A stretch of DNA of 63,984 nucleotides, the filler included, from Olpidium bornovanus S191 (Eukaryota > Fungi > Olpidiomycota), in NCBI GenBank assembly GCA_017911155.1. It is 29 parts of 29 records of this genome, joined end to end, with 100 filler letters (N's around TTAATTAATTAA, not from the genome) between each part and the next. Parts side by side here need not be neighbours in the genome. Positions count along the whole stretch, not along the records: positions 48,194 to 50,285 come from JAEFCI010000071.1; 28 more parts are not named here. One strand, written 5' to 3'. Below are positions 48,094 to 50,513 of the stretch, piece after piece; within the stretch, counting starts at the first letter, position 1; each line of letters starts with the position of its first letter. A program made the translations under genes and the position numbers. The notes below the pieces were generated by a model. It saw only the letters and a list, made by a program, of their open reading frames with translations. It did no database searches and had not been told where the DNA came from.

Positions 48094-48469
48094 NNNNNNN
48101 NNNNNNNNNNNNNNNNNNNNNNNNNNNNNNNNNNNNNTTAATTAATTAANNNNNNNNNNNNNNNNNNNNNNNNNNNNNNNNNNNNNNNNNNNNACGCGTG
48201 TTCCAGTTCGGCCGATCGCCCCGCGCCCCCCCGCGGGCCAGAAACCGGCCTCTTTGCCAAATATTGCGCTTCGCAATTTTCTTTGTAGATGCAAAGGGGT
48301 CCAGTGATTCCATGTCCCAACTCCAGCAGCAGGCCCCAAATTCAAGCTGCTTCCGTGGCTGCTTTGGCAAGGGCGATGTATTTGCTCTCCGTGCTTGACG
48401 TGGAGTGATCACTCCCTGACGACAACTTTGCCAGCTGAATGCCCCTCTCACAAATAGAAAAGGGCGCTT

Positions 48470-49230
48470 CCACTAATAGAAATCTTTTCGATTCGCTTCC
48501 CAAAGGGCGAAATGGGGACCTGCGAGTGTGCTTGCGGCAAGCTGCAATGCGGCCGAAGCATCGAGATTTCCGACTTCGAGAGCTGAGTCCAGTTTAGTCG
48601 CCCACTCGTCGAGTACCGTCGGCGTAATGGTGACCGGTCCTTTGGTGTTGCCGAGGGTAGGTGCTTTCCGAACAGCGTCTTTGCTATGCCCGTGAGCGAT
48701 GAGGATTGTGGACTTGGAGCTGGAGTTGCAGCCACCGGTGACGCCGGCGGAAATACTGGCGACGTATGCGCGGGCGGAAAAACTGGCGACGTATGCCGAT
48801 ATGCGCCGGTCGAACAGGTCGAACCGCCGTCGTTGTCGCTTGAGCGTCGAAGTAGAAACTTCGTTCGCATTCCTCATCGTCCTCAGCTTGTTGGCGACGT
48901 TGCGCTAGGGCAATAGAGTCGTTCAGGGCGACTTCACTGTCGCTTACGGCCTCAGCGTCGGAGCCGCCATTATCACAGACCTCCTGGAGCACTTCATCCA
49001 GCTCGTGCTCGACCGCTTCTGCACGCTTCTTTTGCTGGTCAGCTTCTTCTTGTGCTTGCAGTTGGTCTTCCTCTGCACGGCGCCTGGCCGTCTCAGCTCG
49101 TTTGGGCTGTGCACGCAGCTCTTCGAGCTCTCGTTGACATCGACGTTCTCCTTGGCGTTTGTGCGGCTACTGCGGAACGCGCCAAAAGCACGGAGTGCTT
49201 TGACGTTGTTGACTTGGTGTCCCAAGGGAA
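48470..49230 (-). mobile_element. Possible retrotransposon gag remnant
   Basis: Coiled-coil segment (RELEELRAQ..EHELDEVLQE), then after frameshifts EWATKLDSALE..LQLAASTLAGP..LW, resembling the gag EW...LE....LA...L.G.A..W pattern. It includes a 27-bp duplication at about 48751-48805. Confidence 0.35.
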
Positions 49231-49598
49231 AGCGCCACGCGCCGTTTCTCGACTTCCGAGTAGTCCTGCTTGCAGGCCGGTGCCTGCCGACGGCCTAAGA
49301 AGGCCTGCCGACGGTCCCGGGCCTTGAAAACGGGTCCTCGTTGCTTGCGGGCCGGTTTGCACCGTCGCCGCCGCTCTCGTCGTCGGAGTCCACACTGCCA
49401 TGGCGATCTTTTTCTGCTCCGGCCAAAAGTCCCTCGCCGGCGGCCTGGCGTCCTCCACGAGCAACGGCAGCCCCTGCGGAGCCCGGCCTCGTCCCCTGCT
49501 GCTCTTTGACTCCCTGCCCCCGGTCGTTGGGCTCATAACCTATCGCACTGTTGGTGTTACTGCGGACGGTTTTCTTTTGTCGTGTATTTCTTGCACAG

Positions 49599-49767
49599 CG
49601 GCGGAATCTGCGTATTTGCACCGGTTCCTCCATTGCAACCGACCCTCAAGGATTTGGAGCGGGCCTATGCTAACTTCTTTGCCAAACGAGCCGATTTCCC
49701 GCGCTTCAAGAAGAAAGGCCAGTCCAACAGCTTCCGCTACTCCGACCCGAAACAGATTAAACTCGAG
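49599..49767 (+). mobile_element. tnpB: Fragment of a bacterial-type IS200/IS605 TnpB (OrfB)
   Basis: 49618-49767 encodes APVPPLQPTLKDLERAYANFFAKRADFPRFKKKGQSNSFRYSDPKQIKLE. This matches the proteobacterial TnpB signature LQQ.LKDLERAY.NFF.KRA.FPRFKK.GQ.D.FRYP. No RuvC region is present. Confidence 0.85.
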
Positions 49768-50513
49768 GTAAATGCCAGAGCATCAAATCATCCATCGAAC
49801 GTTCTTGTAATAGATAAAGCTAAGCAATTGGAGAATCCTGTTCTGAAGTGTGAGAAGCTAGGAAAATGGGAGCAATGCATTATGCAATATTGATGATGCT
49901 CTTCTATGGGGGACTTCGACGCACGTTTCAGTACCTTGCGAGTGAAAAGGCTCTAAAGACATTTTTCCTGCTGAAAGATCCAATTCCAACCTACTAGCAA
50001 GTAATTTTGAACGAGTTAGTTCCTCAGAAAAATTAAGATAAGACTCAGCACGATCAAAACGAATTTTTTGTGGCGACGGCAACCAGAGCCGCACGCGATG
50101 AGTCTGACTGTTTCATCGTTTCAGACAAAGAGGTGCTTGGTTTAGGTTCCTCATTTTGTGAGGTGGGAAGGCTTGTTTCAAGAGCGAGAGAGACTGACTG
50201 ATTTTTAGGATCTAAAGTTATATTTTGATCCAAATCTTCGCGGGAATCAGCAAGTTGACCGGAGGATGAATGCCGGCCAACCATGNNNNNNNNNNNNNNN
50301 NNNNNNNNNNNNNNNNNNNNNNNNNNNNNTTAATTAATTAANNNNNNNNNNNNNNNNNNNNNNNNNNNNNNNNNNNNNNNNNNNNCATGTTTTGCCGCTG
50401 TCGAAGTCCCTCTTGGATTACATGTTCCAATTCTTCTCTACCGAGGCGCGGCACTTTCGCTTTCGGCTACGGCCGGCATCTCGGCGGACGTCGCGTGGAA
50501 ATCGGACCCGTTC

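Follow-up and report, generated by a model that had tools for sequence, protein, structure and literature searches.

In the genome assembly of the fungus Olpidium bornovanus S191 (GCA_017911155.1), contig JAEFCI010000071.1 carries a short internal piece of a bacterial tnpB gene of the IS200/IS605 type, and it is certain that this piece is a non-functional scrap of a known family. It is 151 bp long and lies on the plus strand at 49617-49767 of the window, the whole 63,984-nucleotide stretch in which the contig is presented; the analysis covered the 2,092 bases contributed by this contig (48194-50285). The fragment is about 12% of a tnpB, stands isolated from the rest of that gene, and has no nuclease or mobile-element function. 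How it came to lie beside a eukaryotic gene is a separate matter, and we judge, with a shade more confidence than doubt, that the sequence to the right of about 49590 is foreign and was joined on by a library or assembly chimera.

The 50 codons of the fragment contain no stop and align without gaps to residues ~73-123 of proteobacterial TnpB, to which they are 84-90% identical in amino acids and 83-87% in nucleotides; the full-length homologues are ~405-411 aa and belong to IS200/IS605 elements of beta- and gammaproteobacteria. A plus-strand ORF of 103 codons (49582-49893) is open across the whole fragment, reads MYFLHSGGICVF-APVPPLQPTLKDLERAYANFFAKRADFPRFKKKGQSNSFRYSDPKQIKLE-VNARAS... and holds exactly the 50-residue peptide that the initial annotation had quoted as TnpB of the IS200/IS605 kind, an identification upheld by tblastn and by profile and structure matches, with TnpB proteins as the best hits. 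Searched with tblastn against plasmids, the peptide reaches 1,350 records (top E=1e-21, 84-88% identity), and the top matches are annotated 'RNA-guided endonuclease TnpB family protein' in Cupriavidus, Edwardsiella, Xylella and Burkholderia; WP_071040591.1, encoded on plasmid NZ_CP017750 of Cupriavidus sp. USMAA2-4, is among the closest proteobacterial IS200/IS605 TnpBs. Across 185,579 prokaryote species genomes, one per species, there are 373 confirmed relatives, the nearest of which, at 90% identity, is from Alcaligenaceae bacterium CGII-47. A profile of 61 full-length TnpB sequences, run with hmmsearch on all six frames of the whole 2.1-kb piece, finds the fragment at E=1.6e-29 (HMM positions 74-125). 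The NCBIfam models guided_TnpB (E=5.1e-7, profile positions 73-117 of 389) and IS200_TnpB (E=1.9e-6) match it too, far under their whole-protein cut-offs, only 50 residues being present. Pfam is silent because the fragment falls between the HTH_OrfB_IS605 and OrfB_IS605 domains, as is seen on the map of a 411-aa homologue (HTH 1-48, OrfB_IS605 166-279, TNB 306-372) where it occupies aa 73-123. There is also a distant likeness to ISDra2 TnpB, a structurally characterised RNA-guided nuclease (PDB 8EXA/8BF8/8H1J), in which query residues 7-42 match chain residues 79-120 at E=0.007, with about 50% likeness over 36 residues and a 6-residue gap; unlike that protein, the fragment is without the catalytic and RNA-binding core. 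We take the matched ISDra2 residues to lie where the REC lobe ends and the second WED segment begins.

The rest of the protein is missing from the piece. The six-frame HMM search over its whole length detects no other TnpB segment, two further ones appearing at E about 1 only; that search and Pfam on every ORF find no RuvC core or D-E-D residues (OrfB_IS605, aa ~166-279 onward), and they likewise find no TNB zinc finger (PF07282). At the DNA level homology is absent past 49767, also when transitions are ignored, and for the omega/reRNA region the piece has nothing homologous to tnpB's 3′ part or to the DNA downstream of the gene. An Rfam scan at E<=1 gives one chance-level match elsewhere in the piece and nothing relevant. 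Neither tnpA nor subterminal hairpin IS ends occur in the piece; on a Xylella fastidiosa plasmid, by contrast, the homologue WP_042836805.1 adjoins an IS200/IS605 tnpA. With catalytic and guide-RNA parts all missing, the initial annotation was correct that a contig with no RuvC and no omega-RNA can supply no active nuclease.

The limits of the homology, 49617-49767 (+/-2), agree between blastn against plasmids, blastn against 82 loci, and nhmmer with a profile of 77 DNA sequences that each include 150 nt of flank per side; the tblastn matches, the custom HMM and the domain map also enter into the placement. On the right the edge is sharp at 49767 (+/-2), with GTAAAT directly after, so the earlier observation that the homology ends at a GAG/GTAAAT boundary holds. 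On the left it had been proposed that homology starts right behind a splice acceptor ending at 49598; significant homology begins 19 nt later, at 49617, and the six codons between (GGICVF) are unrelated to TnpB. A 26-nt stretch (49591-49616), assigned to neither strand, lies between the unit shared with other samples and the start of TnpB homology and includes the putative acceptor as well as most of 'AESAYL', a frameshifted hexapeptide previously likened to a TnpB motif. That likeness is not borne out by local alignment of 49517-49616 to the 77-sequence DNA profile, which scores 10.7 against a mean of 13.1 for shuffled controls (286 of 300 shuffles score at least as high as observed), and an upstream extension of tnpB with 'AESAYL' standing for TETAWL is rejected on this alignment and on nhmmer stopping at 49617. 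Around the other edge (49762-49773) the homology ends in CTCGAG, an XhoI site, before GTAAAT, and its length of 151 nt is a common short-read length; site and length would both fit a technical join, and both are coincidences noticed post hoc.

The fragment has a history of its own that can in part be read from its differences to the consensus of 77 homologues. These fall at 21 of 150 coding positions, 16 being synonymous and 17 going from GC to AT, and the GC3 of 68%, compared with a family mean of 82%, is barely within the family range. They concentrate at third codon positions, as differences do likewise among the bacterial homologues themselves, and the synonymous-rich pattern is what one would expect of a gene diverging under selection in bacteria somewhat poorer in GC. 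From the preponderance of synonymous differences the gene probably evolved under purifying selection while in bacteria. Four substitutions (H4P, Q8P, D37N and P42S) are private, occurring in none of the 77 homologues; H4P, Q8P and P42S hit residues invariant in 77 of 77, and D37N is at a position where 72 of the 77 carry D. Private changes per bacterial homologue number none in 62, one in 11 and two in 4. Because four private substitutions lie at invariant or near-invariant residues, we infer that the fragment spent some time unconstrained, accumulating by estimate roughly 3-4% decay, and the remnant may by then have been a pseudogene. The initial annotation had described the copy as mutated rather than fresh, and this half of its case is sustained by the private substitutions while the 'AESAYL' argument offered for it is lost. 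No match to the doubly substituted segment PVPPLQPTLKD, written as a degenerate DNA pattern, occurs in 241 M metagenome records.

No donor is nameable because the tnpB family spans many proteobacterial families, other phyla and Ralstonia phages. In a tree of the 151 nt the fragment is placed within an unresolved polytomy, its terminal branch being among the longest (0.12, with a median of 0.04), and the naming of a donor lineage was abandoned in view of this polytomy and of a family found in Pseudomonadota, Verrucomicrobiota, Synergistota and Thermodesulfobacteriota. The betaproteobacterial, possibly endofungal, donor suggested by the initial annotation therefore gains no support from the tree. 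Derivation from a cloning host or from a phage was considered and rejected, the best E. coli match being 76.7% and the Ralstonia phages reaching 84%. Exact-protein look-ups of four ORFs are blank, as are metagenome and viral pattern scans for a source or a second copy, and a word search with the 103-aa ORF gives solely bacterial fragments at 90% or below, none of which spans the non-TnpB tail. The family has features meriting mention in their own right. Verrucomicrobia bacterium LP2A (JAFS01000001/2) has at least 8 copies in one genome, and other members are in MAGs of Synergistaceae and Desulfuromonadaceae and in Dimitile and Cimandef, which are phages of Ralstonia. The element evidently passes between phyla and also onto phages.

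Beyond the fragment, the remaining 518 bp of the piece (49768-50285) form an AT-richer flank, delimited by composition and by blank searches, to which no strand or origin is assigned. GC content goes from about 59% (48194-49590) through 54% in the fragment to 43% in this flank, a fall of 16 points over 180 nt around the fragment. The flank has no blastn match in plasmids or phages, its proteins have no word-sharing relative, and a metagenome 24-mer scan returns nothing; the Atlas features of its ORF lean weakly to bacterial clusters. Two overlapping minus-strand ORFs of 76 and 78 aa occupy different frames at 49858-50284, and they resemble a single frameshifted frame that extends into the piece across its right edge. 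The possibility that the flank is a decayed or RIP-mutated continuation of tnpB was tried and discarded: HMM matches are at E about 1, ungapped window matches in the ACGT and the purine/pyrimidine alphabets are no better than those of shuffles, and the RIP indices are negative (TpA/ApT 0.56, substrate index 1.53). Look-alikes of tnpB in it are, in the same frame, GKW and G.D..ARF.T and, on the minus strand, 'PSPQKIRFDRAESYL'. Repeat and promoter/terminator scans of the piece say nothing on the identity of either flank. The scrap and its AT-richer flank would together be foreign DNA and not a native continuation of the locus.

The left block is of a different kind. This GC-rich unit (48194-49590), which is seen in other samples, holds on its minus strand an orphan gene that runs past the left edge of the piece. 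A 76-nt GT..AG intron (48905-48980, minus strand) is placed by frame arithmetic and by a joint at 48904/48981 in X1, a run from another sample; its removal brings the frame upstream of it (...DEVLQE) into register with the ORF 48904-48473, and since removal of a GT..AG intron joins two frames, the left block is eukaryotic. The last coding exon, of 143 stop-terminated codons (48473-48904, minus strand; from the ORF list and frames), is probably what the initial annotation meant by a gag-like remnant. That description finds little to sustain it, as no relative appears in Pfam at E<=1, in a word search of 5.8 billion proteins or in phmmer against 1.84 billion representatives (0 matches), and Atlas language-model features give weak leads only, at 0.82-0.90, to fungal hypothetical and gag clusters. 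The single-sequence AlphaFold2 model of this ORF, with a pLDDT of 43, is too poor for fold comparison, and blastn of the left flank against plasmids is blank. Within the minus-strand ORF two tandem 27-nt copies, 93% alike (48742-48795), encode a 9-residue in-frame duplication, ...AYVASFSAR/AYVASISAG..., and upstream of the long ORFs of the orphan gene a 12-nt exact direct repeat, GCCTGCCGACGG, occurs twice with a spacing of 21 nt (49282-49314).

Other samples of the organism bear directly on whether the two parts belong together. In a run index eight runs, X1-X8, with one organism label and from two studies, share words with the piece, and with a best share of 0.58 none of them is the one from which the assembly was made; their library type is a guess only ('RNA?'), and a further run, X18, is polyA RNA. 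Among Logan contigs, 48194-49590 is matched at >=99% by those from two runs of study P1 (X1 and X2) and one of study P2 (X4), and contigs end at 49590 in X1 and at 49585 in X2, which is 27-32 nt short of the fragment. Depth over 49594-50285 is zero in X1, X2, X4 and X18, and no contig of X1, X2 or X4 has an empty site joining 49590 to 49768. The word shares, 0.58 and 0.53, are the value expected from the left block alone, from which it follows that the fragment and right flank are absent from those samples whether joined or unjoined. In X18, which may lack the strain, 0 of 10.8 M reads fall on the piece. Three SNPs distinguish the window from the other samples (48324 C>T, 48604 A>G and 48845 C>G; ~0.2% over 1.4 kb), and wherever these are covered the samples of both studies agree with each other.

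What the missing coverage means depends on what the libraries are. The contigs add up to 84-89 Mb (depth 12-15) or 59-68 Mb (depth about 3), which, with the silent RNA run, favours genomic shotgun, and if so the right part is truly absent from those samples. The spliced GT..AG joint in X1 favours RNA; if the runs are RNA, the missing right part says nothing about DNA, and a minus-strand transcript may simply have its 5′ end at 49585-49590. The joint is on a 58-nt contig of depth 3 that skips the 76 nt (CT..AC on the plus strand) and is found beside the unspliced form at depth 7.7; X2 and X4 have the unspliced form only at 48905-48980. The coexistence of the two forms points either to strong retention of the intron or, were the runs DNA, to a second copy that has no intron.

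The same data speak to two further readings. In the first, the whole contig, left part included, comes from an associated organism, and the tnpB remnant is that organism's own IS relic. Neither flank has relatives in very large protein libraries, which leaves the taxonomic origin of both unproven, and the weak pointer of the right ORF to bacterial clusters would suit it; against this, the left part has a spliced intron that marks it as eukaryotic and recurs in two studies under the same species label, and the right part does not recur. We consider this very unlikely. The second, which is barely credible, makes 49599-49767 an exon of an exonised or domesticated TnpB, either a reused REC/WED segment or part of an intron-bearing Fanzor-like gene. 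The fragment is open throughout in the 103-codon frame, and the single GTRART donor on the plus strand of the piece falls precisely where homology stops, which deserves to be noted as a coincidence. The acceptor side, however, is offset by the 19 nt already described, and sites resembling an acceptor (AG after ten positions of which seven or more are pyrimidines) number 34 on the plus strand of the 2.1-kb piece, ~1 per 60 nt. As 49594-50285 is covered neither by contigs of X1, X2 or X4 nor by X18 reads, RNA joints at 49598/49599 or 49767/49768 are seen in none of the runs examined, the 10.8 M polyA reads included, keeping in mind that the types of the other libraries are guessed. Further points against an exon are that no additional TnpB-like exon exists in six frames of the 2.1 kb (none in the 518 nt downstream), that a gene on the opposite strand fills the space upstream, that residues otherwise invariant are substituted, and that identity to bacterial TnpB is 88-90%, far from any Fanzor. 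The bracketing by splice sites proposed by the initial annotation, and the exonisation built on it, accordingly find no backing in the left edge, the coverage or the surrounding sequence.

There remain the chimera and a genuine, strain-specific integration of bacterial DNA, either alone or with the AT-richer flank, now an inert remnant. For the chimera there are the setting, a 151-nt stretch on a 2.1-kb contig from an assembly that is highly fragmented, and the succession of three compositional blocks with contigs of other samples ending at 49585/49590 and zero depth to the right. The source might be an associated or contaminating microbe with an old IS remnant, DNA of which was joined to a genuine GC-rich gene. 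Against the chimera, the closest source for the fragment is only 90% identical in amino acids and 87% in nucleotides and the right flank has none, which is why a contaminant is not pinned down; moreover, an internal fragment with unrelated flanks is also expected of a real capture at a DNA break.

Integration, plausible and yet short of probable, could have come about, for instance, if the repair of a double-strand break used the bacterial piece as filler or if the piece landed where a mobile unit ends; in either case it would lie just upstream of the minus-strand orphan gene. As an insertion would, the fragment borders on unrelated sequence at its two ends, it is no pristine copy of a known gene and has pseudogene-like changes, and the DNA of the left flank truly belongs to the organism. 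If X1-X4 are RNA, as the GT..AG joint suggests, the gap in coverage on the right is uninformative. There is precedent in scattered eukaryotic sequences, from bacteria-associated hosts, that nest in diverse branches of bacterial TnpB (Saito et al. 2023, PMC10432273). Weighing on the other side are the absence of fragment, right flank and empty site (49590 to 49768) from every other sample and the abruptness of the 16-point GC drop over 180 nt. If the runs are DNA, ~4% of unconstrained decay also conflicts with absence from strains only 0.2% divergent, and the two together would put the decay in the donor genome. It is doubtful that the junction is real in the specific sense that one strain has recently taken up a tnpB scrap at a point 27 nt upstream of where an expressed orphan gene has its 5′ end.

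Comparison with known captures is instructive whichever of the two holds. The ~150 bp size, abrupt unrelated flanks, compositional steps and want of corroboration from other samples all fit NUMT-like captures and chimeric contigs alike, with the difference that NUMT-like captures have an organellar donor and the donor of this fragment is bacterial. With Fanzor1 and Fanzor2, the eukaryotic descendants of TnpB, the fragment would share an origin from TnpB and a place in a eukaryotic genome. Fanzors, however, are full-length, RuvC-bearing, borne by transposable elements or viruses, and deeply diverged from TnpB (Bao & Jurka 2013, PMC3627910; Saito et al. 2023, PMC10432273), whereas the fragment is a 50-codon scrap without RuvC that nests among present-day bacterial TnpBs at 84-90% identity. 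It is not a Fanzor-like capture in the making.

The contig merits a flag for contamination or chimera screening, and the fragment is not to be counted as a fungal TnpB, as a Fanzor or as evidence of exonisation; with neither RuvC nor guide RNA, a 50-codon piece can tell nothing about how Fanzors arose or about genome editing. Continuing sporadic acquisitions of TnpB by eukaryotes have been described (PMC10432273), and if the junction is real it would be evidence of ongoing leakage of TnpB-bearing bacterial DNA, the raw material of Fanzor-type genes, into this lineage, with bacterial DNA possibly now in a eukaryotic promoter region. It would then be one more small case of bacterial mobile-element DNA in a eukaryote, and as such would bear on how frequently TnpB arrives there.
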